NCBI GenBank assembly: GCA_965644295.1
Contig: CBFFRP010000323.1
Coordinates: 34,778-98,777 of the forward strand
Length of the DNA: 64,000 nucleotides
Direction: 5' to 3'
Source of the DNA: Paraphysomonas bandaiensis
Taxonomy: Eukaryota; Protista; Chrysophyceae
This document shows, one piece after another, positions 25,950 through 57,683 of this stretch. Both the position numbers and the translations under genes were made by a program. How positions within the stretch are numbered: position 1 is the first letter of the stretch; the number at the start of each line of letters is the position of its first letter. The notes under the pieces are model-generated. The model ran no database searches, was not told where the DNA came from, and worked only from the letters and a program-made list of their open reading frames with translations.

Positions 25950-26082
25950 GGCATCCTTTGTATATTTTTGTTCCAAGATGCCTCTAATATTGAGACAACA
26001 ATTATATGTATTCCAGCCGTATTTATAGTTCAGTAATATAGAGTATATTTGATTCAATTTAGTTCCGAAAAATAAGATGCTG
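25950..26082 (+). promoter_or_regulatory. 133-bp conserved upstream element, copy 1
   Basis: Aligns without net indels to 33106-33238, 48406-48538 (rc) and 57551-57683 (rc); regulatory role is inference. Confidence 0.6.
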
Positions 26083-26289
26083 ACTGCGATACGTATGCAT
26101 GTTGTCGAAATACAATGTATTCTACTGTATTCGGCCCCTCCCTGTATGTGTACATACAGTAGCATGGAGTGCAGAGCGAGGATCTCCCAGTCGCCTCATA
26201 TGCGGACTGCTCTCAGCTCAGTCTCGCAGTCATATTAAGTGATTGTCTTCTGGTGCAGTGCACTCTGTGGATCTGTGCTATCAACCGCT

Positions 26290-29200
26290 ATGTTACCTCA
26301 CACCCTCTCCAGCGAAGATGTCGCCTGTGGCCCTGTGGCCTCCCGAGTGCCTTTCTCAGTCTCCTTCAGGCCAGACGAGCCCTCAGCTGTGTGTTTTTTG
26401 TTTCCAGACTCACAAGGCGCTCGACAGATATACACATACTCCTGCACCACACCCGACGACTCACCCCCCACTCAACTACTGAATGTCACCTCATCCGGTC
26501 GCATCTCTTATGAGGAGCAGCTCAGGAGGGAGCGTATGAGACTATTCAGCACAGGAGTCACCTCATATTATTGGGTTAAAAGGGACGATAGGACAGCTCT
26601 CATGATACCCATAAACGACCAGATATTAGTGTTTCAACAGGTGCTTTTGCTTTTCTGTTGATATGGTTTTCTGTTTCACCTCTGTTCGCTCCCTCTTTCT
26701 ATGAGTTCAGTGTCTATGTTGTTAATACATTCTATTGAACAGGGAGAGGTGTTTACTGTATACGATGGCCACTTAGGAGCTCCTATCGACCCAACTTGGT
26801 CGCCAAATGGCAACTACATAGCCTTCGTTGTATCTGGAGACATATACTACATTTCTCTCCCTTTGGAACTGAATTCTATGGAAACGAAACCAGTTCTTAC
26901 AAGACTAACATATATTGGAGAGAGAGAAGGCTTTAGCTGTGGTCTCGCCGATTTTTTGGCGCAAGAGGAGATGGACAGGTGTGCTAAGGACGGTGTATAT
27001 ACATGTTAGCCGATATGAGATTTGATGCATGTAACCCCACTTTCGTGGTAGCTCATGTTCCACATAGCTTAGACATTGAGCCTGCGTGTGTACTGTATTA
27101 ACCTTTTGAACAGATATCGTGGCTATTGGTGGTCGCCGGACTCCAAACACATTGTATTTACAGGTGTGTGGTGTATTCTCTATATCACTGACTTAGTTTA
27201 TCCCTTGCAGTATTGGATGAGACCAGAGTGCCCGAGTTCACGATACAACATATGGTAAATGTGAATATGTATTTCTGTGTTGTAGTTTCCTATGTCAAAA
27301 TACTCTGCTGACCTCTGGCTCTATGATAGTGGCACTTGTAGTCACTAGTTTCTATTTTCTCAGGGCAGTGAAGATCCATATGCTTCGGAGACTCACCGCT
27401 ACCCCTTTACAGGTGTAATTCATTCCACATTCTGTTGTCCGTCTGTCAGAACATAGAAAATGACATATATCGTGACAGGCAAAATGAACCCATGCGTACA
27501 ACTGAGTGTCATCAGAATTGACACTCCCATGTCAGCTATAAGTGATGCAACAATCATCCCCCTTCCTCATATCAGCCCCAACGGTTCTATCGACGTCCCT
27601 CTTTCTGGGAGCCAATTGTACACTGCATACTCTAATTGTGAGGACAATTATATAGCAAGAGTAGGCTTCTGGCCCGATGGTGGTATCATGGTTCAGGTAA
27701 CTAACAGACTACAGTCTACCCTGGCCCTGCTACATGTTGATACAACAGCGCCATACACTTATCGGGTGGTATTGACGGAGCGTACCGATGTGTGGGTCAA
27801 CTTACACGAGCTGTTGTATACCTTTGACTTTGGGTGGTCTCCGAAGTGGAGAGACATTTCTAATGCCGATAATATTATGTATTTTTTGTGGGGCTCCGAG
27901 AGGTCTGGTTTCATGCGTTTGTATTTATACTCATACAATCCCAGCACATGCTCAACCGAACTGCTGAATTCTTGTAACGGAGAAGATGGGGCTCTTGGGG
28001 GGCCAGGTAATTTCGTCACTGACTCCATACTGCATGTCGATACAGCCCGAGAGATTGTGTATTACTCCAGCAATCAGCACGGTCCCACCGAGAAGCACAT
28101 CTACGTCGCCCCGCTTACCAGTTCCAATAGAGGGTGTCAATCGATTCGGATTACCCCATCTGCGGGATGGCACTCTGGATATATTGACCCTACAGGCGAA
28201 GTTCTGGTTGATATCCACAGTTCTATAAGCTCTCCGCCAGTAATGTCAACGATCCCACTTGTAGCAATCGATGTTTGGCCAGAGGATGCTTCTGATTACC
28301 TATCAAGTATTCAGTGGAATTGGATTAATAGGCAACGAATCATTCTTTCGAACGGCCGACCTTCAGCCGTAACGCCACTTTCGAATTCGTGTCTAAATGT
28401 AAACACGAGGCGGTCGGAGAGAGTGTTACCCGCTCTCTGTATGCCGGAGTTCTACACTATACCTTCCAATAGCTCCTCTGGAGATGACCATGAATTGCAT
28501 TGCTGCATTTACAAACCAGATGTGGGACTACATGGGCAGGGTCCATACCCCTGTGTGGTGGCGGTTTATGGCGGTCCACATGTACAGCGCGTAACCAATA
28601 TGTGGGTAAGTCGTTTTTCATGTGACTCTTTCTTGCACTGAGAGTGTATGTGAACTAACACATGCAGGTGACCAGGGCTGATATGCGTGCCCAAAGACTA
28701 GCACAGCATGGTATAGTAGTCATCAAATGCGATAACAGAGGGTCTTCTAGAAGAGGTCTGCGCTTTGAGGGGGCTATCAAGCATGATATGGGTGTGTACA
28801 CTGCTAAATTCATAGTACTCTCATTATCTATACATTTACTACCTCTGTGGTGATCATCACAGAATATTCGAAATACTGCCATTTATTTCTTCTGTTGTAA
28901 TTGTAAGGAACTGTGTATTTAACCAGGTAACCTCGAGATAAGTGATCAAAGAAGAGCAGTACAGCATTTTGTTGAGCTCGGTTTAGTGGATAAAGATAAA
29001 GTGGGGATATATGGGTGGTCGTATGGTGGCTATATGTCAGCTATGGCACTCTGCAAGGCACCGGAAACATTTCATTGTGCAGTGGGTAGGGATTGTTTGC
29101 TTTTGAAAGTGCAATAACTGTACTTGTTAATTGTGGCGGTTTATTTTGATATAGCTGGCGCTCCTGTGACCTCGTGGGACGGCTACGACACCCACTACAC

Positions 29201-29609
29201 AGAGCGATACATGGGTTTGCCGTTCATGAACCCCTCTGGATATGCCTCAAGCTCTGTAATGAACCATGTCGAGGGACTGCGAGGACACCTCCTGCTTGTA
29301 CACGGATCGATAGATGAAAATGTACATTTTAGACACACTGCTAGGCTTATCAGCGCCATCATTGCGCATAGAAAGAGGTGTGTTGCTTAGTATTCAATGA
29401 TATTCTAACAACATTGTAACGGCTATGCCTGATTTAGATACGACCTCATGTGCTTTCCGCGTGAGAGACACGCACCCCATGATTTGGCGGGATTGATATA
29501 TATGGAGGACAGAATACTAAAGTTTTTAATTGAGAGTCTAAATATAGCTCGACCTCAGTGTAGTATGGATTCACATAAGCATGATATCAGATTGGCAGCA
29601 CATTTGTGA
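26290..29609 (+). CDS. Dipeptidyl peptidase IV / DPP8-9-like serine peptidase (S9B), multi-exon
   Basis: [38 protein letters not shown], catalytic [22 protein letters not shown]. Confidence 0.95.
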
Positions 29610-30751
29610 GGGGCTGGATGGAAATACAAGTTTCGATTATTTTATACTTATATCGGACTTCGGAGTATTTATTGCGGTGTCACGCTTTCTCATATTGGAT
29701 TAGCAAAAGTAAGAAGAAAAAGTTAAATAATATACTATGCATTTTCTTAAATACTTAAATAGGATGATCTGACCACGATATATATTCTATATTCTCTGTT
29801 TGGGATGATATACAATATCGATGGAAAATAAAACTAGCTACTACTTCAAATTCAAATTGATATGTCATATGTCACCAGCAGCACGACTTATATAACTCTA
29901 TATTATTTAGTAAGTATCAATCTATTCTTTGTACGACTCCCCAGCGCCATGTCTACGATTGGCAGTTATCAGTAAGTGTACTCATGTATTTGGGTATGTA
30001 AGAGCCAGTAAGAGGATACAGTGTGTCAGCAGCTGTATTAATTCCCAACAGCAGTTATGGCGTGATAGTTATGTGCTTATGTTGAGTTCCCACTGCTTTA
30101 GTTCAGTAACTATATAATTCTTATCAGCTAGAAGCCAAGAGAACAACACAGAAAGTTTAGTTTGGTTAGTTATCTAACCCTGTATTTCCCATTAGGTGGT
30201 TCAAAACTAACTAAATAGTGTGGTAAACTAAAGCTTTGTCAACTGAAAAATTATAACATTTCTAATCCAAGTAGTCGTCGTTATTACCTTGCCAGACATC
30301 AATCTCATCGTACCCCTTTACAACACCATCAGCAGCTTCTACATCAGAATCATCATCTTCGTACTCAGCAAAATCTTACAACTTCAGAACACACATACGC
30401 ATCCTCCTCACAATATCTACCAAGTGCTATTGTACGATCATACTCAGAACAACCCTCCATTCCATGTTGTCGTAAATCTTTCATTGTACGCAAACCAGCA
30501 TGCTTTCTATGGACATCCTGCTCTACATCCCTCCACAGCTCCTCGATAGGTTGCCCAGAGGGATGAGGATACCGGAGCTGATCATGTGTGATCTCAAGGT
30601 TAGAGACATCGTTAAACCACTTCTGTATATCTGGAAATTCAACTGCTCCATCTTCTTCACTTCTGATGCTCTGAACCTTAAGTCCAACTCAGAAGATTCA
30701 ACCGTTGAGAGGATACCGCCACTGTACAGTACCTCGACACGTACACGTACA

Positions 30752-30924
30752 GGGGGTGGTTGTGCATATCGATTTCAACGATTTGTTCATCGTTTATTTC
30801 ATCGAAAAATCATTGTTTTTTCAGTGAAAAGTGAAACAAAGTGACTTTTTAATGAAAAAACGATGATTTTTCGATGAAATAAACGATGAACAAATCGATG
30901 AAATCGATATGCACAACCACCCCC
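30752..30924. mobile_element. Near-perfect 173-bp palindromic MITE/foldback
   Basis: About 72-bp arms GGGGGTGGTTGTGCATATCGATTTCA..TTTTTTCA / TGAAAAAA..TGAAATCGATATGCACAACCACCCCC with about 2 mismatches. Confidence 0.85.
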
Positions 30925-31224
30925 AGTGTCATGCCGCATACCGCATGAGAGGCACTAAAATGACTGTTTTTTACAACCGCCTGCCAAAAAAGATACTTTT
31001 TCATGTGTTTTTTTCCATGATTTTCGCCTTTTCTCTTCTCCACAGCGACTTTCCACTGCTCACACACCACTGTATTGTGTAATACATCATGTATTTGCTA
31101 CCTTCAGGAGTGATTCCACGCTGTAGTGGATGCTGTGAGTAGATGCATATGGAATAGATAACAGCACTTGGCCTCTCTAACAGCTGCATGGATAAGACCT
31201 CTTGCACCATAGATCACTTGCGTC

Positions 31225-32312: not shown

Positions 32313-33105
32313 TATAAGCCAAAAGTTTTCGAATTTGTAGTTGTATATTGTATATGTAACATAGTTATTCATGTTTGTATCATTCTAATGTAACACACAC
32401 AGAACGATGACGAAATAAAACGAAATTAAAACTTTTCTTCATCTTCCATTCCACTAACGTTTCGAATTTGGCGCCCATGTAAGCAGGACTTTGAGCTACA
32501 GGCTACAGAACTAATCAAATTTCAAATACACTTGAAAAGTATGTATATGATGTAAAATGCTAGTTAATAACATTTTTCGATCATCCGTTCTTGCGTTGTA
32601 TCGACGTACATCTAACAAGCAAATCGGGAAGTTTCTCTTCTCTTCCATTGCTCTACGCTTCACGCTTCATCTATCGAATATCGCCCTCGGTTTGTTTGGA
32701 ATTTTAAGTACATGTAAATTGAAGTATGTGAATATGTATGAAGCTCGGAGATAGTAAGACAGAAATAGTTATCAGTCTTAACTGAAAGGCATCGATTTGG
32801 AAGATGGAAGATGAGAGTGTTGTAGCGGCGTTACTTGACAATCATCTCACCCTACAGAGTGATAACAGAGACAACCACCCTCTCACCTCATGAGGAGCAC
32901 ACACCACTATACACCACTATGACCACACACTGTTGATAGTCCTCACTCGTGTCTGTGAGTAGAGGCAGCAGCAGAGCCTCTGAATCATGTACTCATATAT
33001 GCATATATCCACATCACATTCACTTCGAAGTCACCCAGAGATATACACTCATATACGTACACGTATTCCTATGTATACCATATACATATGTAAAGCTGTC
33101 GTATC

Positions 33106-33238
33106 GGCATCCTTCGTATATTTTTGTTCAAAGATGCCTCTAATATTGAGACAACAATTATGTGTATTCTAGCCATAGTTATACTGCAGTTATATAGAGT
33201 ATTTTTGCTTCATTTTATTCCCGAAAAATAAGATGCTG
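33106..33238 (+). promoter_or_regulatory. 133-bp conserved upstream element, copy 2
   Basis: As copy 1; ends 190 bp before the DYNLRB ATG. Confidence 0.6.
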
Positions 33239-33428
33239 ACTATACGGTTATGTGTATGTGTATGTGTATGTGTATATATGTATATGTATAGCTATGTGTA
33301 TGTATATGTGTATGTATATACAGTATGTATATGTATATATGTGTATGTATATGTGTATGCGTATGTTATCAATCTTATTGTAGCATAATTTCATTATTCG
33401 TAAGTTGTGTCAGTGTTTGTGTATTGAG

Positions 33429-33775
33429 ATGTCGATCGAGGTCGAGGAAACGATAAAGCGAATTCAGTCCCATAAGGGCGTAAAGGGAGTACTGATAATG
33501 AACACAGAGGGCATTCCCATTCGGTCGAACTTTTCTCCAGAGGACACTGAGAATTATGCGTCTCTTGTGTCTCAGGTACGCTGTGACATGATCTCCGCCT
33601 GTGGGTAATAAAAGTGTTTTGTCAGTTATCGCTGAAGGCTGCTGGAGTAGTGCGGACGCTGGATGAGAGCGATGAGTTAGCTTTTCTCCGAGTGCGGTCG
33701 AAGAAGCATGAGATCATGATCGCACCCGACAAGGATTATATATTAGTTGTAGTGCAATCTCCCAACGAAGCATGA
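33429..33775 (+). CDS. DYNLRB: Dynein light chain roadblock (LC7 family), 2 exons
   Basis: [65 protein letters not shown]. Confidence 0.95.
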
Positions 33776-37254: not shown

Positions 37255-37877
37255 TATTTCGCATTTTGTTATGGTTAACTCGTTAGAGTTGCGAAGATAT
37301 TGCCTGTAGTGCGAATATTCTCAATATCTGAGAACCCAATATTTGAATGTTGTGCAACTACGTAAGGGCAGCTGGAAACACTGATGGGACTGCCAATTCA
37401 AAAATAGTCGATAGTAAAGTGTCGTTATGCGATATTGATTTGTACTTCGCCTCCCCATGGATTTGGCAATTATATAATAAATGTGAAAACAATGCGTTAT
37501 GATATTTTTTAAATTCATCCTTCTGTTTAGTTGTCGAAAACTATATGAATTTGACAGTTGGATATCAAATAGTAGACAGCGAGGTAATCACGGTTTTACT
37601 CACTCGCGCAGCTGCATATGCTAGTTGCTGTTGAGTTTTACTAATTGTAAGCAATTAAAAGCTATACTTTAAGATATTCGATTTCCACCGTTTTCAAGAT
37701 AGACTACTGGAAAGCTGTAGTGCATGAAATGATTATGATATATATATTAATAATATATTTTATATATAATCGATACCAGGAAATAGGGAATTGCTCAACT
37801 ATATACAGTTACCCACAACTGTATACTTATGCAACCTCGCAACCAAATAGGGAGAACTTCTTCAAGAAATTCATCAA

Positions 37878-39911: not shown

Positions 39912-40064
39912 CTTATATGTATAGGAGGGAGCGGGAGTGGAGAGGGGCGCTTGGAGCCGCTTAGTAGTGGTACCTAAACTGATGTTGGTGAAAGAGTGGC
40001 AATAATGGAGACTCATACTCGACGGACCCCATCGATCTATAGGCAGTGAGTTCTATCCTTTAAC

Positions 40065-40168: not shown

Positions 40169-40213
40169 GAGGTACAGAATGCAGATCATGAACCTTTTTT
40201 GTGTGTGTTGTTG

Positions 40214-40508: not shown

Positions 40509-42223
40509 ATGGAAGTGTTTTTTGAATATGACGATGAGGAGTTTTCTCTTCGTGGTGCTGATGGAGACTGGACAATGGGACACTTGAGAAGCCAGATTCA
40601 TTGTCGGCTGGAGCTCAGCGACAACGAAAGATGTTTCACTCTATCTCACGGAGGTCGGAGCGTTTCTGCCCAAATGAAATTGAAAGATATGGATATCAGC
40701 GTGCTGTTTCACTACCACAGAAAAGAAACTGACAATCCTACAAGTGATCGACCGTTGCAGGTAATGAGTATTTCAGACTGCCGCAGTGGTCGTGAAGTTA
40801 AATACCGTGACTCAGGTGGCCCACAGCTGTCACACACTATTGTCTTATCAGGGATGGCGTACTGAATATAGAAACTAACACAATTGAGTGGAGGGATTCT
40901 TTACCTCTTTTCGAAAACAAGAAATCTCTCTTTGTTCGAGCGGCTTACTCTGATATCTATGAATCTATACTCCTGTCAAAGAAGCCTCGCAACGTAGTGA
41001 CGGGCGTGCCCGGAATCGGAAAATCTCTCTTCTGCTTGTATTTTATTTGGCGATATATTAGGGAAAACTGTAATGTTCCTTTTCTTTTGGAATTTGTAAA
41101 GGACGAGATCCAATTATTTGGTCCTGATTGTCACGAGGTGCTCACTCGTTTACAGTGCACTGGCAAGAAAAGTCCTTATTTTGTAGACATTCACGAAATC
41201 AATGAACCCGCTACAAATGTTGGGTCTTTCGCAGTTGTGTTTAGCTCCCCACACCCAGGACGGTTCAAGCAGTGGATAAAGAATCCTGACCTGTGCGATC
41301 GATATGTTTTGCCCATATGGTCGCTCCCTGAACTTCAACGACTAAGGCTAGTTCTTTTCCCATCGATTTCTTGCGAGGATGTGAACTTCCGTTTTTCACG
41401 AGTGGGTGGTGTGCCTCGGCTGGTGCTGCAAGGAGGTGACACATGGTTTGACGACTGTCTACAAAATGCAATCGCAAGGAAGGGTGCTGCCATCGCCGAA
41501 TCTTTCTTCATTTCTGGATTTGGCATGAAAGACGAAGATATGCCGTACACGCTTGTTCACATTCATCCTGACCCAGACAACTATTGCACCCGGGTCGAGC
41601 ACTTTACGGTGGCCTCAACTTACATTTGGGAACGCTTGTATCGATTGAACCAACGGTCTATTCTGAGTAAATCGGTTGATTATTTCAATGGAGGTACTGG
41701 GGCATTTGGAGGGTCGTTTGCTGGACATCATTTTGAAAATATTTGCCTTATTGCACTGCCAATTACTGGTAAGCAATTCAGATTAACTTCATTGTGGACT
41801 TCGAAAGGCAATGATAGTTGTGTCAAAGAAAAAACAGTGTCAGTGCCGTCAACTGCACGCGCACTTTCAACGGATGATTGGGACAGGGTCCTATTTGAGA
41901 GCAATGTACATTACATTCCAAACAGAACGAATCTTGATTCAGGAGGCTCTTTTTTTCTGTCTGATGAAGGGATTCTGTATGTGCTGCAGGTAACGGTAGG
42001 AAAATCGCATGTGGTGAATGCACATGGTCTCGAAGTCATAGCCAGTGTGTTTCCTGCTGACCAAGTGCAGGAATACTGCTTGGTGTTTGTGGTACCTTCG
42101 CAAGGCCAATTGGACGCTCCGCAGAATATTACAAGAATGGTGGACGGACGGCAAGTCATAAGAACAACGAAAGTAGTGAGGATGTTTACCGAAAATCAAT
42201 GGAGATTGGAATATTCATTGTGA
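40509..42223 (+). CDS. Crinkler/RHS-type protein: ubiquitin-like header + P-loop NTPase + REase-like domain
   Basis: Ubl-like N-terminus 40509-40760; LFVRAAY, Walker A VTGVPGIGKS, FSSP, LPIWSLPEL, VGGVPR, GHHFE, YIP..N..LQVTVGKSH, LVFVVP; the header-NTPase junction needs an intron or frameshift near 40760-40850. Confidence 0.8.
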
Positions 42224-42984
42224 ATGCTGTACCACAGAGATTATTCACTTCCGGAATTCATTCTCCTTATTTTTTGATTTTATTAAAATTTTCAACATTT
42301 TTCGACATATAATACAGAGTGAAAACTATCTAACCTTTTGTCCGTATGAGCAAAGTTATGATTCCCAAATTAAGGTGTGAAATTATTTATGGTAAGTGTT
42401 TTTAACTTGAAAAACATAAAATGCAGAATCCTCACATCTCTCCAGATCAGGTTTGCATTCACAAGAATGCGGAGAAATTCGTGATAATTAGTTGGACTAA
42501 CATTCTCTGATACTCCCATCAGAACCGATGACTTTGCTTTAAGAATTTCGAATTAAATAGGATAATAAAAATATTATAAAAAAATAGAATATTTCATTTT
42601 GTAAATAATTTTTGTCTTGTAAAGAAACATAGTAGGGTGTAAAGAGTACGTAAGTTAATTGCTAATATTGCTTTTGATTATTCATTGAAATCACTATTTT
42701 CAAATAATGTTCCAAGAATCGCTAAAAGACTAATTTAGTTGCGTATAGTTCTATGGGATAGAACTGTAGAATGCGTTAAATATAATGTGAAAAACTGTAA
42801 CACGTAGTCAAAAGTACTCTACAGCTATAACTGTGAAACTGAAGTATCATGACGATTCAAGATACGGAAGTTGATCAGTGGTTGACACGAAAGAAATATG
42901 AAATTATGTTGTTGATAATATGTTTTACATGACAATGCATAATTACGTATGCAATAATAATCATCTAACTAATCTAACGACATA

Positions 42985-43450
42985 AAGTCGGACTCGCCCC
43001 TTTTCGTGGTGTTCTGGGGGATAAGTACCGGAGAGATTCTTTCTTGGAAACTAACGTGGGCCGCAAACATGGACAGCAGATATTCTTTTGTCCACTCATA
43101 GCCGAATGCTTGTATGGTACAAGAATGGACACAAATAAGTGTTACTTGTGTAGACGTCTTTGGGCCCTAACGAATAAACAGGCATCCGGGACAGGGCCCA
43201 CCTAAAGGGTAACCGGGGTATTGGGCTGCCTGCTGAAGTAAATCATCCGGGATGTTCACCTTAAGAACTCAGAGCGGAAGTGGTCGCACCTTGGTGCTTG
43301 CGGCACAAGCAGATTCCGTAGCGTTAAATAGTAGGATAAAAAAAGTGTGTACTGATTAGTTACAGGTAGGTCTAACTAGTTTGTCTAGCATTCATCTAGC
43401 TAGTAAGTTGGTGCAGGTTTTTAATGCTTATTTCTAATAATAAGACTTTC
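42985..43450 (+). repeat. Dispersed repeat family B copy (left arm of an inverted pair)
   Basis: Approximate reverse complement of 44115-44640. Confidence 0.8.
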
Positions 43451-44114
43451 AATATATAACGACATAACTTTTCTTTTACGGTCTAAATTATAAAAAGACT
43501 AAAAGTCAATACTGCATTACTAGAGAATGTTCTTGAGCATTTGAAAGTAGTACTAAAACATGCTATTATTCTTTGGAACTATTTTATAAAATTTTACTAA
43601 GAGCAATTTTACGGTTGTGTTCATTCCACCAACATTATACCATTCAAAAGTAAGGGTGGAAAAACGAAGTTTTTTCCTGTGTGAGAAGCAGCCCACTCCA
43701 GTATGAGTCGGGATCTCTCTGCCCATATTTTTTCAATAATCTCACTGTTGAAGCCAGAGCGCTCAATAACAGACCAAGATATTTATTCCTGGTTAGCTTG
43801 CCGCCACTCATTGACAAGTACTGCTGTCTCTGTTGTCTGTTGTCGACAGACCAGAGCAAGTGCACGATAAACACTCACTGTCGCTTCGATGTAATTCTGC
43901 AAATTAACTTTTTCTCGTTGGCCTTGAGAGCTTATTTTGCATGGCCGTTTCGGATCACGCCTGCACATGTTTTGCGTGCGGTTGCCACAATGATTCTATA
44001 ATTAGGAGTGATACGGAACGTACACTACAAGGTGTTATCAAAATCTATGAAAACCCCTTTACCTCGACACATTATTTTCGATGACATGTGTCATCATACT
44101 CAGACCTATATATT

Positions 44115-44640
44115 GAAAGTCTTAATATTAGCAATAGGAGTTAAGAATCAGCGCCAGTTTAGTAGCTAGGAGAAAATCAGTCAAGCTAGATAGATTTCTA
44201 CCTGTAACTAACTTGTACAAACACTATTATCCTACTATTTCACGCTACGGAGGCTGCTTGTGCGTCGCCACAAGCACCAAGGTGCAACCACCTCCGCTCT
44301 ATTGCTCAAAGCAAACGCCGTGAGCAAGCAGAATGTTGATATACCTGACATATACTGACTTCAGGTTTTCTGAGTCCTTAAGGTGAACATCCCAGATGCT
44401 TGACTTTAGTAGGCAGCCCAATATCCCGGTTACCCAAACAATTCGATTTGGGTTAGCCTGTTTTTTTGTCAAGGCCCAAAGACGTCTACACAAGTAACAC
44501 TTATTGATGTCCCTTGTACCACACAAGCATTTGGTTTGAGTGGGCAGAACAGTATCTGCTGTCTGTTTCCCGGAGAAATATCTCAGGTACTTATCCCCCA
44601 GAACACCACGAAAAGGTGTGAGTCCGACTTTGTTGAGGGT
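44115..44640 (-). repeat. Dispersed repeat family B copy (right arm of an inverted pair)
   Basis: Contains CTTGTGCGTCGCCACAAGCACCAAGGTGCAACC and GTACTTATCCCCCAGAACACCACGAAAAG. Confidence 0.8.
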
Positions 44641-46140
44641 ACTCAGACAAAACCTCTTTTGGAGGACAGCCAATTACAGAATAACAGTAATCTGATGACA
44701 GATCTCATTTGTCTCATTCCAGTAGCAAGTGTGCACGGCCCTGTATGGATGTAAACTGACTCTCCATATTGAAAAGTTTCACTAAACTGTTTGCAATTTC
44801 GGAGCCTCCAAGAAGGCGCCTTGTACCCCCTTCCTCTTATTGCGGTGCTCATCACTCTGATTCTCCTTTTATGGACCTGATTGCTCTTTCTTCCCTTGTC
44901 AAGTCTAATACAGGTTATGCGATGAAAAAGAGTTTTCTTGAAAAAGCTGAAATATCTTGTTTATTTACGATTCCCTCTGTATGTTTTAAGGCTAAACGTA
45001 TTGGAATTATTCATAAAAGTAATGAGTTATATAGATGTAAAGCTGTAGTTACAGCAAAAAGAAATTTAGTTCAAGTTTATTTCTTAATAGCTAAAATACA
45101 CCAGAAGTAGTATCCTGGTTGATGCCCGAAGTTGATTGAAGTAAACAGTAATAAAACAAAAGCTCACTCAACTATCTGTGATACCAGGACATCATACTTT
45201 TAACCCTACTAATAAGGCGGGTCCTGGTTTAATCTTGCAGCTCCTTCTACATAAAATTGCCGAATAGCTGGTTGTTACATTCAATTGACTAACAGTTGTG
45301 ACAACCGCTTCTCCTCATTGATTATGGTGTTATTCAGTGCAGAGTGATCTCTATGTAAGCACGTATGCCATAAAACTAATACCACAGAAGCTTCATATTC
45401 GTAGTGTGAAAGCATATCCATATACAAGTACATGGGTGCGGATATCATCCCTGTGCAACTATCGTTCCCTCAGCGGAGGGTATCTGGAGAGGTTTATGAG
45501 GTTGAAGCTATAGATGAACATTCAAGTGATCACAAGCCGCAACACATTCAACTCCACATCTCGGTAAACAGAGAGACTCACTCATGGGGTCACTGAAGCA
45601 CATACTGGAGACTTCCTCCAGCAGTACGTGCACTGCTGCTAGCCATCTTTTAGCTAAACGTACATGAGAATGCTCACCCTGCAGCAAATGGCATGCTACT
45701 TATTGAGCAGAGATGATTGTTGAGTGAGTTGACGGGGGTGGGTGGAGTGAGTGATGTAGCTACACGCACGAAAGTGTAGAGTAGATAGTGTATGTACATG
45801 TACTGCTGTACTCTGCATATGTGTACTGTATGACATGATGTGCGTACACTCACTCTGTGTGTATGTATGTATGTATGTATGTATGTATGTATGTATGTAT
45901 GTATGTATACAACTGGAAGACGATTTTTTTACGCAGGCAGGCACTGTTTTTTTTAGCTTTGTGGGTTGTCCTCCATTGCACTTCAAGAGTTGAAGATGGC
46001 GGAAATGAGATCTGTCGCATGTCGCATGTAGTCATGCACCTGCATGCTGATCAGCCTAACATACACTATATCATGCACATACACTATGTCTTGGCTCATG
46101 TCGAGTATCTATCTGATGTGATTACCTGGTAACAGTTACC

Positions 46141-47173
46141 ATGCGAGTCTCGTCAGATGATAGTGAAGACAGAAGCAAGGGGCCGGAGAGGTACGTTGCT
46201 TACCTGCGCAGCATGAGAGTCGCTCTTTCGACAAAAGCTGAGCGATATCTGGCGTACTCTAGATTGATGAGGCAAGGGAAAGGCATCAGTAAGCTACTAT
46301 CAAACTCAAGGTATATCGGTTGACTTCCCATTCAATTACTAACGAGGACATACTGATAGAATGCTCAAGCGAAGTGCCGATATTGGTGATGCTGTGCGTC
46401 CAATTTCACTCCCGACTGTATTTTATTCCCTGACCAATGGTAACTGTTGATATAAGTCAGATTTTCTCCTGAGTAATTCACTCTTTTGGAACTATTTGTA
46501 GCTATCACTGCTACATACGTTTTGTATGAAGTATATCACGCATCTAGCACGATATATACACGAACTGGAAGCGTGAAGGCAGCAGGGTACTGAACATATC
46601 CGATTATTGTCTGTTCTGCGATGCCAATACCCATGTTTATAGTTCATGCAAGAAAATAGCGTTGTGGGCAATGCGTATTATATTTAACATGTCTAAATAA
46701 TTAACAAGGTTTCTTGCCTGTAGGATTGCTGGTGTACGGACATTTGTGTTCGAATGCACCGCGTCAGTTCTCCTTCCCTCTGCGCTAATTCACATCGTAG
46801 TTCATTCTGCTCAAAACTTTTTATCCCGCCATCGCACCATCGGCAACACTCTTTTCAATCGAAGCACTGCATCTACGCATGTACTGCACAATAAATTGGT
46901 GACTAGATTTCCAGTCTACGTGCCATCTATATTGGGTCTACTTTGTGTGCCCCTCCTGCCGATGGTAAGACGCTATATCTGAATAATTCTGGAATGGCAC
47001 TCTTTATGTTCATTGTATTTAGATTATAGACCCCCCTGTCGAAGCAATCGTGGACCGCATTTTTGATAAGGTCAATTCAGTATTTACATGTGTTGTATAA
47101 TATTTTGGAAACCGTCTCCTTCTGATTTGTCAATATCTGTCAGGCGTTTTCACATATGGACAACCAGACATGA
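46141..47173 (+). CDS. MTFP1: Mitochondrial fission process protein 1 (MTP18)-like, multi-exon
   Basis: RYLAYS..DIGDAVRP..ITATYVL..VFECTASVLLPSALIH..VPSILGLLCVPLLPM-IDPPVEAIVD. Confidence 0.7.
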
Positions 47174-48405
47174 TAACAATAGACCGAAAATTGGGCTAGA
47201 AGTTGTAAATCTATTCTATATATAAACGTGCGTCGAAGAAATAATTTGATGTTTAGCTGCCAGTGTACTATTTTAACACCATTTTACTTAACTCTGTGGT
47301 AACGATATAAACCGACTTGGTAGTATACTGGACACTGGACACACATGTATATACATGTTTTTCGAAGCTTACAACATGAACTTCCAACCAAGTATGTAAC
47401 TTTTTGAGATAATAAGTGTATTTTTAATGTAATATATTTTACTTATTTTATAGATTAATATAACTAAAAACAGCTCCGTTTATAGAGTGCGTTATATGAA
47501 GCGTAGTGTAATGGAAGATAAAGGAAGAGAAAAATCCCATTTTTCATACCTTTAATACACCAAACTTTATGTTAAACTTAGAAGAATAATAACCTTGAAG
47601 ACAGTCATTACCTCTGCCTCTATACGACCTGTCCATCCGAGTTGATGTTTCATAATCCGTAGCGCTTGGGACTTCTTGATCCGTAGCTGCTTGGAGGAAG
47701 TGTACTACCCTTGCTGTAAACCTATTCTTTCCATAGGTTGTATAGGGTACAAACACCTATACCTCAGTAACGCTAGCGCGATTCCTCACGTCAGTAATAC
47801 TCCTTGGTTGAGGGTCTTTATAATAGTCATGACACATGCACCAAATTAAGCTCAAAGACATGTTTGCATATTCTGTAGACAGAGAAATAGCGCTGAAACG
47901 ATTATTGGGACCTGATAAATCCAATGGGTCAGCCCTTGGCTCAGATGGAGTGAAGAAAGGGGCATCAAAGCAGTGGGGTCTGCTGGGGATCTTAGAGGCA
48001 GTCTCGGAGATAATTTCTGGCCTAAACCACCTAAACGATCGATTCAACGACTCTGCTGGGATATCTTGACCTTATCCTTTGATTATGGGGGTCTACTATG
48101 CTTAATTTGAGTATCAGTGTCTCCATCAGCCTCAGGGCCATCTTCAAAGGACCCTCTGCCGCGTTTTAATTGTTTCCTCGACATCTAAGAGTCCCTAAGA
48201 GCACTGACATCTAAGAGCCCCTGAGAGCACTGAGGGTATTATTCCAATCGTCAAGAGCATGTATTGTTACCATAAAAGTCTGATAAATCGGCATTTAATG
48301 GGCTGTTTTGTATAAAATCAAAGTATTTCGATTGCTAAAATGCAAAAGTTACGGAATAGAAGATACTTTTTCATGTTTTTTCATGATTTTTGCCCTATCG
48401 GCAGT

Positions 48406-48538
48406 CAGCATCTTATTTTTCGGAAATAAATTGAAGTAAGTATACTCTATATTACTGATATACAACTACGGCTGGAATACAGACAATTATTGTCTCAATA
48501 TTAGAGGCATCTTGAAACAAAAATATACAAAGGATGCC
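48406..48538 (-). promoter_or_regulatory. 133-bp conserved upstream element, copy 3
   Basis: As copy 1; about 180 bp before the inferred DHHC ATG. Confidence 0.6.
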
Positions 48539-48715
48539 GATACGTCTCCAGCAGTAGCGTAGTATGTGGTAGGGTGGAGTATTGTACGTGGTGTGGTAAG
48601 GTGCATACAGAGGCCGGCATATTTAGAGAGTTGGACAGCTCAACAATCGACTTATTGTGCCAGTCTGGTCTCGAAAAAGCGACTCTGAATGAGATGAGAC
48701 TTCCTAGGTGCGGAG

Positions 48716-50904
48716 ATGTCGGCACCTCCCACAGGCAAGTGTTACAGACATGTATTTCATGTACAGTACAGTGTATAGGCCAGTGCTTACAGTATGATGT
48801 GGTTTGACCGGCATGTATGGTGTATGTGTGTATGGTAATAGTTCGCATGTTTGGTTTTGATGTGGATGAATATGCAGACAAGTCAGCATGTTTTGGTATG
48901 GGGTTGATTGTAGTAGAGCATAGCATAGCATAGTATCGTGTACTGGTGTTGGTCTTTCGCGTGTTGTGACTGAGAATATGTAGCTCCGTATACTGGTTAA
49001 ATAGCGAGCCATGCGGGTTCATGTGCGGCATGATGACCTGGGCCCTCCTGGGGTTTGCTATGTACACCACGACAAATTCTGTCATCCGCCCGTGGCTGGG
49101 ATTCGGCGCTCACGGGTTGTTTCACACTATCCTGTTCAATACCCTATGTTCAATAGCCATGTACACGCATTATGCCGGTGCGTACATGCCTCAGAGTAAT
49201 GTATAATTTTTATTCATCCTTCCACAGCCATGACGACGGATCCAGGGGCTGTACCGAAGGACGCGCGACCGCTGCCGACAGATGATCAGGAATACGACCC
49301 AGAAGTGGTAGATAGGTACTTATGCAGTTCGATTGTCACAATGCCTTCTAATCGTGATGTCTCTGTCTGGAACTTGCTACGCTTTTGGTCATCAGTCAGA
49401 ATAAGTATAAAAAATACTGCAAGAGATGTCGCGCATTTAAGCCGCAGAGAGCTCACCATTGTAGCATATGTGAAAGGTGTATTATAAAGGTACAGCAGCT
49501 AATTCGACCGACTTGTCATAATATATTTCCTTCTGTCATGTGGCTGTAGATGGACCACCACTGTCCTTGGGTGAACAATTGCATAGGCCTTGGCAACCAC
49601 AAACTCTTCATGCTGTTTTTGTTTTGGGTTTTCGTTGTCAGCGTTTACGCTATCATTCTTTTGTCTGCAAAAAGTCTCACCTGCTCTATGCGCAAAACGT
49701 AAGTGCGTAGTCAACTTGATATTCATGCGTATGTATATATCTATTAAATTATGAATACATAGTGCGTATGTATTACGTTTGAATGTCCACTCACATGTAT
49801 GCATCAGAGTGAATGTTTGTGTATCTGGAAGCGTAGTGACACGTCTTCTGTTAACTATCATAGGGCGAAACACTATTGTGGCGGTCCCTCGAATTCTGTT
49901 CTTAGCATTGTCTTGCTGGTTGAAGCTATTTTGTTTGGGCTATTCACATTATGCATGATGGCTGATCAGAGTGAAGCAATCTCTAGTAATCAAACGCAGA
50001 TTGATAGACTAAAAAACGAAAAACATGACATACAGGTCAGTGCTGTTAATCTTCGCAGTGATTTTCTGTGAGTTGTTGCAATTGTGTTGTCATTGTGGGG
50101 TCGTTTTTGTGGTTTGATAGTTGTATCTTGTTTCCAGACGGCTGTCAATGAGGTTTTTGGCACTCCTAGTACTGTTAGGTATACAAGAGTTGTTTTGTGC
50201 ATAAAATAATGCGTTGTTTCATGACCTGGGCTTGTGTTTCATTATTTATTTATAGTTTCAGCTTTTCTTGGCTGATCCCCATTAGAGCCAAATTTCCTCC
50301 AGAGTACGTCGACGTTATTCATGGATATACATTGCAGCGAGGCAGTGTAGGTGGCAGTGACATAGACAGGTTCGTTGTCATGTCCAAGCTTTCGAAGTGG
50401 TACATATTGTAACATGTTTGCTGTACTTACAGAGATTCAGAGATGATGCCCCTCACTCAGCATGTGCATGACCAAACGACATGCGGTGATGATTTTGCAT
50501 ACAGTGAATGTATCGAACCAGATAATGATGTAGTTGTTGCCTTGCCCAATTCGAACACGGTAGATCACTTGTAATTTTGTACTCTGCTCTTTAATCTTAA
50601 TATACAACAGGAGCGTCTGCTTCCCCCAGGATCCAATGCGACTACGAGCAGATCAAGCTCATGTAGCAGTTTAGTAGACGGCGAAAATCAGCCTGTTACG
50701 GGTGCTTCTGTCGCCTTATCGCGGTCTTCAAGTAGCAACAGTACATCCACGACTCCTATGCATGGGACGAATGTGCGAATGGGGAGCAGTACCTCTAACG
50801 GATGTGTTACGCAGCACAGTGTCCGAAAACGTGGTGTGACATCTACTACAGCTTCTGGTGTCATATCGTATACTGCTGCTGCCGACACAATCAGCAAGCA
50901 ATAA
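48716..50904 (+). CDS. DHHC palmitoyl acyltransferase, multi-exon
   Basis: [64 protein letters not shown]; the first exon at 48716 is inferred. Confidence 0.93.
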
Positions 50905-51589
50905 CAGCAGATGTAACTGTGCATCTCATATTGGACCTACCATATAGCTATATAACACACTCTCTACGAGATACTATTTATTGTGATATTGCCGTCATAA
51001 GTAATAATTATTAGTGGTGTATTTCCTGTGCCACTGTATTGTGGAAGAAAGAAGCACAGCAAATTGAAAATAGAAGCCGACGAAATTAAAATGCGAGGAT
51101 ATATATCCCATGTATTCTCGTAATAAAGCTCTAATTGTAAAACAATTGGACTTCTTGGGATGTATTATCCAACAATGTCAGAATGGTTGAAATCTCTCGT
51201 CACTCCAATTTCTGTATAACTACGTCGAAGTAGATGAAAAACCTCGTCACGAATTCATTAAACATTAGAGATCAACAATAAGAAGGCTGATTATCTGTTT
51301 ACAGGTGTTCATAAAAAAATCTCGTTCGCAGAACAACTTACTCTATTTATCTCTTAAAATCCATGTTTGCACAACTTATTTATACAAATATACCCTAATC
51401 GAATAGTTTCACAATCAAATGAAAATTGGCAGTCTGCCTGCCTCAATTCCAAGCAGGCATGATGAGCTTCATGTAATCTCTATCGTCGGTTTCGTACCTC
51501 TTCGTGGTGTCTGGAGTATATTAGGATTCATCTTAATATAAAATAGTATATGTAAAATATAATGTTCAATGAAATATAATAGTATGTAT

Positions 51590-52210
51590 CATGAACTGAA
51601 TTAATGGAAGTAGCTGTTGAAGATACTTGATCGTCATTGTCAATTATACTTCTAACTATTCCGTTGTGTGTGATAGTTATGTTCTGCATTATTATTCACT
51701 TCCTACTACGTTATTGTGTTCATCACTTTATATTTATTGTAGACTCTAATAATCACAACATTGTTCTTACTGTTACTAAGCTTAAATGCTTAAATCTGCA
51801 TTGGAGATAAGTACCGGAGAATTTTTTTCTCCGGGAAACTAACGTGAGCTGCATATATGGACGACATTCTGCCCACTCATAACCAAATTCTTGTTTGATA
51901 CAAGGGACACTAATAAACAGGCCTCCCGGGAATCGGCCCAACTCAAGGGCATCCAGGCTGTTCACCTCTTAAAGACTCAAAAATCCTGAAGTCAGCAGAT
52001 GTCAGGTATATATCAACATTCTGCTTGCTCACACTGCGTTTTTGCCTTGAGTGCTAGAGCGAAAGTGATTGAACCTTGGTGCTTGCGGTGACGCATTTGT
52101 GGCGTTAAATAACAGTAAGGTATCAGAGTTAAGCACCACTAGTTAGTTAAATTGCAATGCTAAATTAGTTCTGACTCTTACATGCCTATTGCTAATAATA
52201 ATAAGACATT
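51590..52210 (+). mobile_element. LTR-like fragment (matches 60523-60705) followed by a family B copy
   Basis: ATGAACTGAATTA..CTTCTAACTATTCCGTTGTG..CTCTAATAATCACAACATTG is shared with the pre-gag region; then GATAAGTACCGGAGA.. of family B. Confidence 0.65.
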
Positions 52211-52874
52211 CACTAAACACGTAGTAAACAACACCAATGTTTTTTCACGAGGCTAATATGGGACTTCAAGCCGACCTGGGCATGAAACGGGGTAAAATAT
52301 TTGTAGCAAAATGTTCCCCCACGTATTACTAAAAGATCGTATGAGAATGATAACATGAATATGGCGATTGACAATGATGCATGATAAGTAGACATATTGA
52401 TCTTAATTAAACTTTACTGTAGTTTTACTATTTTATAAATCTCAGCATAAAGAGTGAAGTCTTGTTCAATTATTACGTCATTTTCTAACAAAATTCTTTT
52501 ATAACAGACTTCATTGTCATGTTGTATGTATGTTGTGTATAATGTATTATGATAGTGTGTCAAATACTGCGCTATATTTCCCTAAATTATGAGTCAAAAA
52601 ATGAGTTGTCTGTTAAAGCCATTGTGGCACGCACAACGTTAATAGATAGTACGAAGTAATAATTCGCTAGTAGTCTTATGTACGTCAGATAACAGGCGTA
52701 TAAAGGCCAGATTCTGTGGCTACCGGTACACGGTATATATACGACCGGAATAGACATTCACGATAACTAAGTAATATTATGATGGTATATACAGCAGGCG
52801 TTTTATAAGGATACTATTAGAGTTTATAGGGTACCAAGGAGTTTTATATTTATATATGGGTATAACTAGAATAT

Positions 52875-53708
52875 GTACCACTATGCCATCTCACTATATA
52901 CCACTATACTATTTCACTATACACCCGGATACCATATATATCCCACTATATACCCATATACCATCTCACTATATTATACCACTACACCCCATCTCACAAT
53001 ATACCCATATACCACATTACTATTCACCACTACACCCCATCTCACAATACACCCATATACCACATTACTATTCACCACTACATACCATCTCACTATATAC
53101 TACTATACCATCCCACTATACAGTATATACCAATACACCATCTGATCTCACTATACACCACTGTACCATCTCACTATACACCACTATACCATTTAATTAT
53201 ATACCACTATACCATCTCACTATACATCACTATACATACCATCTCACCATATATACCACTATACCATCTAACTATGCTAATATACCATCTCATCATACAT
53301 ACCATACCATCTAACTATATATATCACTATACCATCTATCTCACTATATGCTAATATACCATCTCACTATACATCACTATATACCATTTATTATATACCA
53401 CCATATCATCTCACTATATACCACTATACTCACTCACTATACACCATCATCACTATACCATCTCACTATACATCACTATATACCATCTAATAACTATATA
53501 TGCTAATACACCATCATCTCACTATATACACCCATTTACCATCTCACTATACATATCACTATAGCATCTCACTATATTATACCACTACACATACCATCTC
53601 ACTATATTATACCACTACACATACCATCTCAGTATATTATACCACTATATATATACATACCATCTCACTATACATACATCACTATTTTCCATCTAACTAT
53701 ATACCATT
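52875..53708. repeat. Complex satellite with ATACCATCTCACTAT core
   Basis: Dozens of degenerate copies, almost G-free on the + strand; short reverse-complement patch at about 15345-15427. Confidence 0.92.
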
Positions 53709-54505
53709 ATGGAAACTGGTTATTTGTGGATATGAAGCTGAGAGAAAATAGGTAGAGGGTAGAGTAGATATGGATTTCTAAATATATCATTTATCAGGCT
53801 CAAGCGTTATAAAGTAGACGCTGTGCTATTAACCAATATGGCCATGCCCATGAAAGAGGTAGATAGTAGGGCTCTAACAGTGTTACTCCGACCCCACGAG
53901 TCGCGTCTCTATTTTGACACTATTTTCTATTCTACCATGTTGTCATGTCGGAACTTGGAAAAGTAAAGTGATGAGAGATATATGGTGCATTATGACATGC
54001 CTAATTAAACCCCTCATTGATGAACTCAAATTCTTAATTAATTTCTGACAATTTGTTTCGCAATTGACGAGGAAGTTACACCAAAGATGGTGTCACGAAG
54101 CATTTCAAACATCACATACATTCACCCTTCATTATAATAGCTTAATAACTTCATCATGGAATATCGACGACAGGTACTGACTCATAAGTAAGGGGTTCAG
54201 CACAAGTAAAACAAACGATACTGCGAACGAATTACACGTGACACAGCGCAGTCACACTTTGAGAGGTAATGTATGTCAAAAAATTATGGTCACTACAGCA
54301 AACATGTCATTTCAAAACTATCACTAAAAGGAAACGGGTCTTCTGTACCAGCACAAATGATTAAATACAGAAATAAGATTTAAAGCTAGTCTTGGTATTT
54401 AGTAAAGACACACTTGGTATTTTTAGAGATAAAGATTGAATGATAAGGCCTAATAGTATAATAGCAAGACACGTTTGAGCAGAGCGTTGGTACTACACCC
54501 ATGTG

Positions 54506-55589
54506 GGGATATATTATTCAACCTAGTCAATTTGGTGGAATTTCCTAGTCATTCCATTTTCGGTGTAAAAACCTAGTCAAAGTCATAAATGACTCAACCT
54601 AGCCAAATATAGTATTAAACCTAGTCGTTCTTATATCCATTGATTACACATTGCGACTGTCTAAGATACGTGCACACACCACACAACATATTGATGGCTC
54701 GTAGAGCATCACAACAAACATAACAATTCATTCATATCTACATATCTACATAACAGTGTATGTGTATGTATATGCAGCATATCTGTATAGCTTATTAGTG
54801 TACGATGGGTCTCTTATCAGTGTTATGAGGAGGAGGAGTGGTCAGTACCTCAGTACTACAACTGTCCTCGGTTGTGGGACGATAGCCGCTGTTGGCCTTA
54901 CTGACTATCCGTACATCACTTGCGAGGTATGTGCGAGACATATATTCTCTAGTATATATATATATTTACAATCTTGTGAGTGATAATCATTGTGTTATGT
55001 ACTATCATAGGTACCTCAGTACTACAAATGTCCTCGATTGTGGAGCAATAGCCCCCTACTATATTTTTTCTCTGTGCAACTGCGTTTCACTGTTGCCTAT
55101 AGGTGCACATCACTTGGGAGGTGTGTACGAGATATATATTGTCCTGTACATATCTTAATGTTATCGTCAGGGAACATTATTGTCAATAAGCTCCATTATG
55201 CCTGAAAGGATTTGCGGCAGTCCTTGCAATAATTCGAGTGCCTGGAGATATGTATATGCTTGGATTGGTGCTGGTATACAAGAGCGAGAAAGGGTTTCGA
55301 TGGCAGCGTCGGTTCTCTGATGCCCCTGATGAGATATTTTTTCCATCCTAAGATACGATGCTGAAATATATGATGCACATTGCATATTGCATGCATGCAA
55401 TATTTGTAGAGTATGCTCCCACGTTTGACTAGGTGAATACCCTATTCCACCTAGTCAACCTAGTCATTGTAAAGTTAAAAATCTAATTATTTAATGACTA
55501 GGTTTTTCAACCTTTTGACTAGGTTTTTACTCCAATTTTGGTGTGACTAGGAAATTCCACCAAATTGACTAGGTCGAAAAATAGATCCC
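54506..55589. mobile_element. Non-autonomous TIR DNA transposon (1084 bp)
   Basis: About 46-bp TIRs GGGATATATTATTCAACCTAGTCAATTTGGTGGAATTTCCTAGTCA / TGACTAGGAAATTCCACCAAATTGACTAGGTCGAAAAATAGATCCC; ATGTG on both flanks; subterminal CCTAGTC repeats. Confidence 0.85.
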
Positions 55590-55777
55590 ATGTGGGGAGT
55601 GACTCTTAATATACGGCATAACAGAAGTAATTGTATCCTGTATAGTAACCAACTTTTACTTCAGTTTCATACTACACAATATAACGTACAAATTGCATAT
55701 ACATATATCTTTCGATCCTTGCATCTCACATAATACTGCACTCAGTTGCGAGTATATATAGAATCTTCAGATCTCAA

Positions 55778-56016
55778 CACAGCAAACATGTCATTTCAAA
55801 ACTATCACTAAAAGGAAACGGATCATCTGTACTAGCACAAATGATTAAAAAATTATGGTCGCTACATCGAACATGTCATTTCAAAACTATCACTAAAAGG
55901 AAACGGGTCTTCTGTACCAGCACAAATGATTAAAAAATTATGGTCGCTACAGCAAACATGTCATTTCAAAACTATCACTAAAAGGAAACGGGTCTTCTGT
56001 ACTAGCACAAATGATT
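55778..56016. repeat. 85-bp tandem repeat (about 2.8 copies) with a detached fourth copy at 54278-54362
   Basis: Period 85 (AACATG ends at 55790, 55875 and 55960). Confidence 0.92.
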
Positions 56017-57475
56017 TCGCCGTCATCTGATAACGCCACTCCACTTCCCTTACGCCGGCCAACAGGCATCTTGATCCTACAATCACTCGAGTTAGAATGT
56101 TGTATGGAGATGCCGCAATACACCACACCTAAGAGATTGGGCGTGTAGCATCATCCGCTCAGCATGGTTGCACATCTCTGTATCATTGTATGTTCCATCC
56201 CCCACTGTTACAAATATAAATATATTATGATGAGCAGTATATAAACGGGTAATACGTGGGGTTGCCATACCTATGGGATGCCCAAGAGCTACGCAGTGAA
56301 GTCTGAGCTGGTGCCTCCGACCAGTGATCGGAGTGAGTCTGACTTTGGTCACAGGGTGCCCCTGGTATGTGCCATAACAAAGCACCTGCATTCGTGTCTC
56401 ACAAACTCGGGATCGATGACGGTTCTTACGAGGCCCTAGACAGTCCTCATCAGCGTGGTTGTCACAGATATCATCAATGTCATTTCCATCCCCTTCGCTT
56501 GGCGAAATTCGCATTCGGAAATCGCCATGAACGCCCTCAATAGGGGCTGTAATGTAAACGGTGGATGGATCTGCTTTTCCGTCGCTATCAGTCACTAGCC
56601 GAAACACATGACTGTCACGACAGTAGTTCTCCGGTAGCGGTCTGACATCTGCTGAACTAGCGACTTTCTCATGCACAGGACGCGGTGGAAGTTCTTCAAA
56701 GGCAGACCGTTTGGAGGGCAAGACTGACTCAATGTACACACCGCTGTGTTTAAGAGTCTGTCTCAGTTGCTTGCGCAGTTTGCTATTGCGTCTGAAGTCA
56801 TCAGCGTTACACTCCGACATCGCTTTGATTCGATGCTGTAGGTCTGGTGAAAAAGCGCTGATGTCGTCCACAGCTCGCTTAAGGGCATCCATGTACGTAG
56901 AGAGGGATAATTCTAATGCTCTGTCCTGCCACGTTGAAGAATGAGGTGCTACAGTGACTTCTTGGTTACCCGTCGCATCATGTTTACGCTTCTTGTTCAG
57001 ATCCAACTGACAAGGGCGCTCGGAAAGAATTTGGATTGAGCTTATATCCACATGTCCCTGGAGCACAGCAAGGTACACTTTCTCAGTGTGCCGATTTTGG
57101 AAAGCGTCACAAGCACGAGATCTGCCAGCGAGTCAGTAAGCACATATCGATACACAAAACTACAGTCACATCACAGTAGACATCAACTCACGCGAATTTC
57201 CGATTGAGACCCACACAAAGCACTCCAGATGTCGCGAAATCCAGTCTATGAACCCACTTCAAGTTTAGGCTGGTTGATCCCAAATAAGAGAAGAGAAGTT
57301 TCTCAACAGTGACCTGAAAGTCTCCGTACATACGAACATCCCACGGCTTGTCTATGATCACATACTCCTCCGTCTGGTCCAACACCTTCACATGTACTAC
57401 ACTGCATACCTTACGCCTACAGCTGTAAGAACCATCATCATCAGCTAAATCAGATTCTGATCTATTCGGCACCAT
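55947..57475 (-). CDS. RluA-family RNA pseudouridine synthase, multi-exon
   Basis: IIDKPWD, catalytic VHRLDFATSGVL, K.YLAVLQG, ITAPI, PITGRRHQLRLHC..LGHPI-GDGTY, MMLHA; last exon ends DPFPFSDSFEMTCLL*. Confidence 0.92.
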
Positions 57476-57550
57476 AGATCACAGAATACTAACACACACA
57501 CATAGCAGCCAGACAGCCGACGACATGAATGAATGTGCTCCCATACAGCG

Positions 57551-57683
57551 CAGCATCTCATTTTGCGGAAATAAATTGAAGCGAAATTCATCTATATTAC
57601 TGAACTACAACTACGGCTGGAATACACATAATTATTGTCTCAATATTAGAGGCATATTAGAACAAAAATAAACGAAGGATGCC
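57551..57683 (-). promoter_or_regulatory. 133-bp conserved upstream element, copy 4
   Basis: As copy 1; lies in the divergent RluA/CK1 intergenic region. Confidence 0.6.

Follow-up and report, generated by a model that had tools for sequence, protein, structure and literature searches.

The plant MITE (miniature inverted-repeat transposable element) families Tourist/mPing and Stowaway are short and non-coding, carry terminal inverted repeats and are bordered by a short target duplication of fixed length. They are present in hundreds of copies that fall into subfamilies, and they are found in excess next to genes, in open chromatin. Naito et al. 2009 are said to have observed that mPing inserts preferentially upstream of rice genes. 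Gene-proximal MITEs in open chromatin are also described elsewhere in the literature (e.g., PMC12647706 and PMC6881990), and in Caenorhabditis the CERP2 and CELE2 MITEs occupy the promoters of many unrelated genes (10.1101/2022.01.21.477252). Here we describe a repeat family of similar appearance in the stramenopile protist Paraphysomonas bandaiensis, analysed from a stretch of 64,000 nucleotides (GenBank assembly GCA_965644295.1, contig CBFFRP010000323.1, positions 34,778 to 98,777; hereafter the window) in which four copies lie near the starts of unrelated genes. A previous interpretation made from the letters of the window, called here the sequence-only reading, had presented these copies as a length-invariant 133-bp element and had proposed for it a domesticated promoter module with fixed spacing, a promoter-targeting MITE or a multicopy structured non-coding RNA. 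Our analysis indicates that the element is very probably a non-autonomous cut-and-paste DNA transposon, i.e., a MITE, which is 151 bp long and targets promoters.

The assignment to the MITEs follows from the combination of terminal inverted repeats, a fixed short duplication, the lack of coding capacity and the hundreds of dispersed copies. The family shares with the plant MITEs all the traits listed above, the open-chromatin setting being in its case a probable one. In its mode of action it also resembles other transposons with a preference for promoters. It differs from them in that their duplications are TTA/TAA (3 bp) for mPing/Tourist and TA for Stowaway, while those found here are 2 bp long and variable; the termini are CG...CG and the host is a stramenopile protist. 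The likeness to CERP2 and CELE2 consists in the presence of one family at the promoters of many unrelated genes. However, the Caenorhabditis elements have documented promoter activity and a motif arrangement (10.1101/2022.01.21.477252), whereas the present family is known from its sequence, is randomly oriented and lies at variable distances from the genes.

Borders, target duplication and copies of the family

Alignments of 39, 70 and 67 copies together with their flanks define a full-length, non-coding consensus of 151 bp, which starts with CGTATCGGCA and ends with TGCCGATACG. In the consensus of 70 copies these two ends form a perfect terminal inverted repeat of 10 bp, which reaches about 14 bp if 7 bp inserted in the 3′ arm are left out of account. 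This arm reads GATGC-TGACTGC-CGATACG and, minus its 7-bp middle, would be a mirror image of the 5′ arm over its first 12-14 bp. L010:1493-1643:- is an example of a near-consensus copy. The borders initially set at GGCATC and GATGCTG were too narrow, since the element runs 5 bp further on the 5′ side and 13 bp further on the 3′ side; as a consequence, both the terminal inverted repeat and the 2-bp duplication had been overlooked. The constant length reported for the four window copies holds for the inner GGCATC..GATGCTG segment, which measures 133 bp in each of them, but not for the full copies, whose lengths are 150, 147, 151 and 148 bp. The internal GGCATC..GATGCC stem noted at that time corresponds to a third, inverted occurrence of the GGCATC(C)TT motif at element positions 33-40. 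The repeated subterminal motifs of the GGCATC(C)TT type would resemble transposase-binding sites. Three sampled copies (L031:3904-4054, L036:3968-4118 and L040:3968-4118) end with GATGCATACG instead of GATGCTGACTGCCGATACG. They look like a subfamily devoid of the 7-bp insert in the 3′ arm, or like the outcome of a recurrent deletion, and their 3′ arm would mirror the 5′ arm more closely.

The flanks of the copies carry the mark of a target duplication. Among the 41 copies with both termini intact, 30 are bordered by identical dinucleotides, as compared to an expectation of 4.1 and a maximum of 11 in 1000 shuffles. As the identity extends to 3 bp in just 3 of these 41 copies, the duplication is 2 bp long. 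Its sequence is variable and leans towards A/T: AT and TA were found 6 times each, AA and GT 4 times each, TG, AC, GA and TT twice each, CA and CT once each. No target motif was detected beyond this A/T-leaning dinucleotide, with few C at position -1 and few G at position +2.

The core 21-mer ATGCCTCTAATATTGAGACAA, the best-conserved block, exact in all four window copies and without a match in 100 shuffles, was used to estimate the abundance of the family. With up to 2 mismatches, it has 805 matches in the 62.5-Mb, 669-contig genome (403 forward and 402 reverse), while a control pattern has none; a BLAST search with one copy returned 903 first-look candidates. The family therefore comprises at least 800 dispersed copies, belonging to several subfamilies. 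An exact search of the metagenome collection with the same 21-mer returned no match. Of 70 sampled copies, 38 are exactly 151 bp long and 59 fall between 150 and 152 bp. With respect to the overall consensus, each of these 70 copies has on average 0.6 indel events and about 14 substitutions, and the resulting indel:substitution ratio of 0.042 is low, but not remarkable for an element of 151 bp. Substitutions (about 9% with respect to the consensus) are spread over nearly all sites, and almost every site varies across 67-70 copies; the "invariant blocks" seen earlier are what chance yields when four copies with ~9% divergence are compared. Furthermore, at some twenty sites the copies divide between two or three alternative bases, so that part of the many substitutions noticed among the window copies reflects a difference between subfamilies. 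Transitions at the 12 CpG positions of the element amount to 10.7%, as compared to 5.6% at the other C/G positions (70 copies), a weak hint that the copies may be, or may have been, cytosine-methylated.

Some copies are nearly identical although they reside at unrelated sites, which indicates that the family has moved recently. For instance, L037:3904-4054 and L047:3904-4054 show 0% divergence over 151 bp, even though they lie on different contigs and, apart from the AA bordering both, have unrelated flanks; this identity suggests a very recent transposition from what would be one source. L007 and L011 (duplications TA and AC) differ by 0.7%, and L021 and L026 (GT and TA) by 2%, again at unrelated sites.

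Placement of the copies relative to gene starts

The position of the copies with respect to genes was examined at 51 independent loci, consisting of 27 derived from BLAST, 20 taken in contig order and the 4 of the window. At each locus we recorded the direction in which the nearest coding-scored open reading frame (ORF) points on either side of the copy. Fifty of the 56 flanking coding ORFs (89%) are directed away from the element, as opposed to 6 directed towards it (p = 1e-9), while the share of away-facing ORFs seen from non-coding positions of the window is 49-51%. An away-facing ORF is found within 500 bp of 31 of the 51 copies, as compared to 20% of the non-coding window positions, and in 12 of the 51 cases the ORFs on either side of the copy both face away, which places these copies between head-to-head gene pairs. 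The strong excess at gene 5′ ends, added to the terminal repeats, the 2-bp duplication and the ~800 dispersed copies, bears out the promoter-targeting MITE, one of the three options of the sequence-only reading. The same data speak against a domesticated promoter module with fixed spacing. In fact, the orientation with respect to the nearest gene start is the same in 17 cases and opposite in 21, and the distance to the ORF border, whose median is ~290-330 bp, has an interquartile range of ~170-510 bp. Random placement relative to gene starts, or ordinary indels with clear target duplications, had been named in advance as findings that would contradict a special element: the duplications are clear and the indels ordinary, as expected of an ordinary MITE, but with respect to gene starts the distribution of the copies is not random.

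The bias does not depend on the age of the copies, the ratio of away-facing to towards-facing ORFs being 23:4 for the less diverged and 29:2 for the more diverged ones. Moreover, the flanks of the sampled loci harbour ~12-13 extra copies, where ~3 would be expected from the genome-wide density. In the intergenic regions with two or three copies, neighbouring copies are 11-23% diverged from each other, like random pairs (mean 15.6%). This level of divergence excludes local duplication as the origin of the clusters and indicates that the same spacers have been hit repeatedly by independent insertions.

Other features of the insertion sites were considered. The sole copy scored as lying inside coding sequence, L039, falls in a stretch by which a stop-to-stop ORF extends, without coding, on its 5′ side; a gag-like gene follows downstream. 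The gene downstream of this MITE (L039:3010-4164, minus strand) encodes a copia-type gag-like product, with the MITE ~200 bp upstream of its likely start, and the MITE is possibly inserted in the upstream region of a retrotransposon. We discarded (TATG)n arrays as the landing site: an array lies within 400 bp of 7 of 69 copies, as compared to 2.6% of window positions, and the association runs via promoters. L020, L023 and L042 are inside or abut pure (TATG)n/(ATAC)n arrays. Also rejected was the supply of start codons by the element, as the outward ATGs present in both termini open ORFs with a median of ~20 codons, of which the long ones receive non-coding scores. At one locus, L008:1503-1653, the outward ATG in the 3′ terminus opens an ORF of 233 codons with a weakly positive coding score (6.1), the sole case among 94 termini tested.

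Affinities of the element and origin of its placement

The termini and the duplication were compared with those of superfamilies of cut-and-paste transposons. Tc1/mariner elements (Stowaway-like) require a TA duplication, and this assignment was rejected because TA accounts for 6 of the 30 matched duplications. ISL2EU elements are classified in Repbase as making 2-bp duplications. However, in this group, which belongs to the PIF/Harbinger-ISL2EU-Spy superfamily, GG usually opens the terminal repeats, and the reported families are all from animals (PMC4482050), while the repeats described here start with CG and belong to a protist; ISL2EU was rejected on account of this start. Finally, the CMC superfamily (Chapaev-Mirage-CACTA) makes 2-3-bp duplications, and those of its MITEs that duplicate 2 bp resemble the family in this respect and in their short terminal repeats, but share invariable 5′-CAC...GTG-3′ termini (PMC6004678), whereas the ends of the present element are CGT...ACG, and CMC was excluded too.

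A search for the parent element was carried out by looking for termini that continue into other sequence. The 5′ terminus is followed by non-MITE sequence at 4 sites, and the 3′ terminus at 1 and 3 sites, according to the two depths used. When the first 55 bp or the last 45 bp are required, the genome contains no site at which they continue into unrelated sequence. Seven terminus-like sites, a set distinct from the four 5′-terminus sites, were inspected: five are mutated MITE copies, while the remaining two, isolated and with unrelated continuations, are probably chance matches. The terminal repeat is absent from a further 328 kb of examined DNA.

On the basis of these data, the life cycle of the element may be pictured as follows. 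A transposase encoded elsewhere would recognise the short terminal repeats and excise the element, which would then be pasted into the target through a 2-bp staggered cut. Integration would be steered to sites just upstream of gene starts, probably by promoter chromatin, which is open and poor in nucleosomes, and above all by that of bidirectional promoters. Chromatin-steered integration is tentatively favoured in view of the independence of the bias from age, the repeated insertions in the same spacers, the near-emptiness of 3′ sides of genes and of the gene-poor stretches of the window, the lack of a target motif beyond the dinucleotide and the small number of copies close to (TATG)n arrays; purifying selection on its own would be less likely to have produced the placement. 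As the copies occur in both orientations and at varying distances, their resemblance to a module placed upstream of unrelated genes would be a by-product of the choice of target.

One competing explanation of the placement is that insertion into non-coding DNA is random and that the element is subsequently lost, by selection or deletion, from introns, 3′ untranslated regions (UTRs) and gene-poor, repeat-rich DNA, so that an excess at the 5′ ends remains. The genes of this organism have many short exons and introns, so that harm could result from 151 bp inserted into an intron or UTR, and the lack of a strong target motif beyond the A/T-leaning dinucleotide is in keeping with indiscriminate insertion. 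We consider this possibility unlikely, though worth bearing in mind, because insertions into promoters generally do no less harm than insertions downstream of genes, and yet the 3′ sides of genes are nearly empty (6/56). Furthermore, the gene-poor stretches of the window at 10.8-16.4 kb and 42.2-56 kb hold one copy, the bias does not grow with the age of the copies, and the same spacers have been struck over and over, each time independently. Alternatively, some or many copies could have been co-opted as promoter parts, providing, for example, A/T tracts, a TATA-like TATATAG or factor sites to bidirectional promoters, and could be kept at gene starts for their function. The Caenorhabditis germline promoters derived from MITEs offer a precedent (10.1101/2022.01.21.477252), and the 89% of away-facing ORFs, together with the 12 of 51 copies that have such ORFs on both sides, would fit this scenario as well. 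In addition, some copies end 40-90 bp from a coding ORF (67 bp in the case of the RluA ATG), so that the core promoter must overlap or abut them. As a general explanation, however, co-option appears improbable. The random orientation (17:21), the variable spacing and the neutral-looking decay, with ~9% substitutions at nearly all sites and CpG sites showing about double the transitions of the remaining C/G sites, argue against it as the cause of the pattern; besides, less and more diverged copies are equally placed, and ~800 copies cover a small share of the genes. Some copies may nonetheless act as promoter parts.

The third proposal, according to which the repeat is a structured small RNA encoded in many copies or a short interspersed element (SINE) transcribed by RNA polymerase III, is hardly tenable. 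Single copies do fold somewhat better than their shuffles (z from -1.3 to -3.9) and contain the GGCATC/GATGCC stem, but the added stability derives mostly from base pairs between the two terminal repeats, and the fold predicted varies from copy to copy. In the alignment of 67 copies, RNAalifold retains 5 pairs (-2.2 kcal/mol); the covariation term is -0.03 and compensatory changes number 0. The window contains no match to an Rfam family at the gathering score, copy 1 plus flanks gives a best E-value of 0.27, and ARAGORN detects no tRNA-like head in the element. SINEs are recognised by a head derived from tRNA, 5S or 7SL RNA, an internal RNA polymerase III promoter, a 3′ tail rich in A or made of simple repeats, and the absence of terminal inverted repeats. 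Here, instead, the terminal inverted repeats and the fixed 2-bp duplication are marks of DNA transposition and not of retroposition.

A promoter-targeting MITE thus accounts best for the data, yet several points weigh against this interpretation. The combination of termini and duplication matches none of the compared superfamilies that make 2-bp duplications, and no autonomous partner with matching termini was found, a search whose reach does not include a parent sharing just the 10-bp repeat. As for the placement, gene starts were deduced from our own in-frame hexamer (dicodon) score, trained on long ORFs and applied to stop-to-stop ORFs in place of gene models or transcripts, and the control consists of the non-coding positions of the 64-kb window alone. 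Finally, the placement may reflect insertion preference, differential retention or both.

The window copies and the meaning of the family

A profile hidden Markov model built from 68 copies and run with nhmmer matches exactly four places in the window and no others, and this result, together with the alignment and the shared 21-mer, confirms the four related copies pointed out by the sequence-only reading. The names then given to the neighbouring genes were also correct, as shown by the Pfam domains PseudoU_synth_2, Pkinase, Robl_LC7, DPPIV_N and DHHC. Copy 1 (25944-26093, plus strand) is 150 bp long, having lost 1 bp within the 3′ terminal repeat, and has TA on both sides. Its 3′ end faces a DPP-like gene (DPPIV_N), whose first ORF ATG is at 26290, ~197 bp away, this start being uncertain. 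Copy 2 (33100-33246, plus strand) measures 147 bp because 4 bp are missing from the 3′ terminal repeat, and GT borders it on both sides; its 3′ end faces the gene for a roadblock/LC7 dynein light chain (Robl_LC7), with the ATG at 33429, 183 bp away. A TG/TA-rich microsatellite of the TATG/TGTA type (33247-33385, without strand assignment) lies between copy 2 and the roadblock/LC7 start, outside the element. Copy 3 (48394-48544, minus strand) has the full length of 151 bp and a mutation in the last base pair of the 3′ terminus (..GATAGG), with GA and GC as flanks. Its 5′ end is turned towards the DHHC gene (DHHC), which has a candidate ATG at 49021 on the plus strand, ~477 bp away. Copy 4 (57542-57689, minus strand; ~148 bp, with a decayed 3′ terminus) is contained in a 600-bp spacer between two head-to-head genes, coding for an RluA-type pseudouridine synthase (PseudoU_synth_2) and a casein kinase 1 (Pkinase), whose ATGs are at 57475 (minus strand), 67 bp away, and at 58077 (plus strand), 388 bp away, respectively. 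The distance of about 75-210 bp from the start codons proposed earlier roughly holds for the RluA (67 bp), DYNLRB (183 bp) and DPP (~197 bp) genes, but not for the DHHC gene (~477 bp), relative to which the copy is in the opposite orientation. In two long parts of the window, 10800-16400 and 42200-56000, no ORF scores as host-like coding in the dicodon model, and these stretches look gene-poor or repeat-rich. The one MITE copy they carry is that at 48394-48544, beside the DHHC gene.

A promoter-targeting MITE is a known kind of mobile element, and what we describe is a new family member rather than a new regulatory element. What is unusual is the combination of CG...CG termini with a variable 2-bp duplication. 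A more far-reaching idea, which we put forward as a speculation with little chance of being right, is that the family reports a separate lineage of transposases in this heterotrophic stramenopile, differing from CMC, ISL2EU and Tc1/mariner by its variable 2-bp duplications and CG...CG termini and tethered to promoters, above all bidirectional ones, and that a subset of the copies would be working promoter parts. The preference for promoters, with about nine in ten flanking genes facing away, is among the cleanest seen from sequence alone, in a protist that harbours many odd DNA transposons, and the MITE copies are handy natural markers of promoters in a genome that is still unannotated. Moreover, the family points to a transposase that reads promoter chromatin, which would be of potential interest once found.

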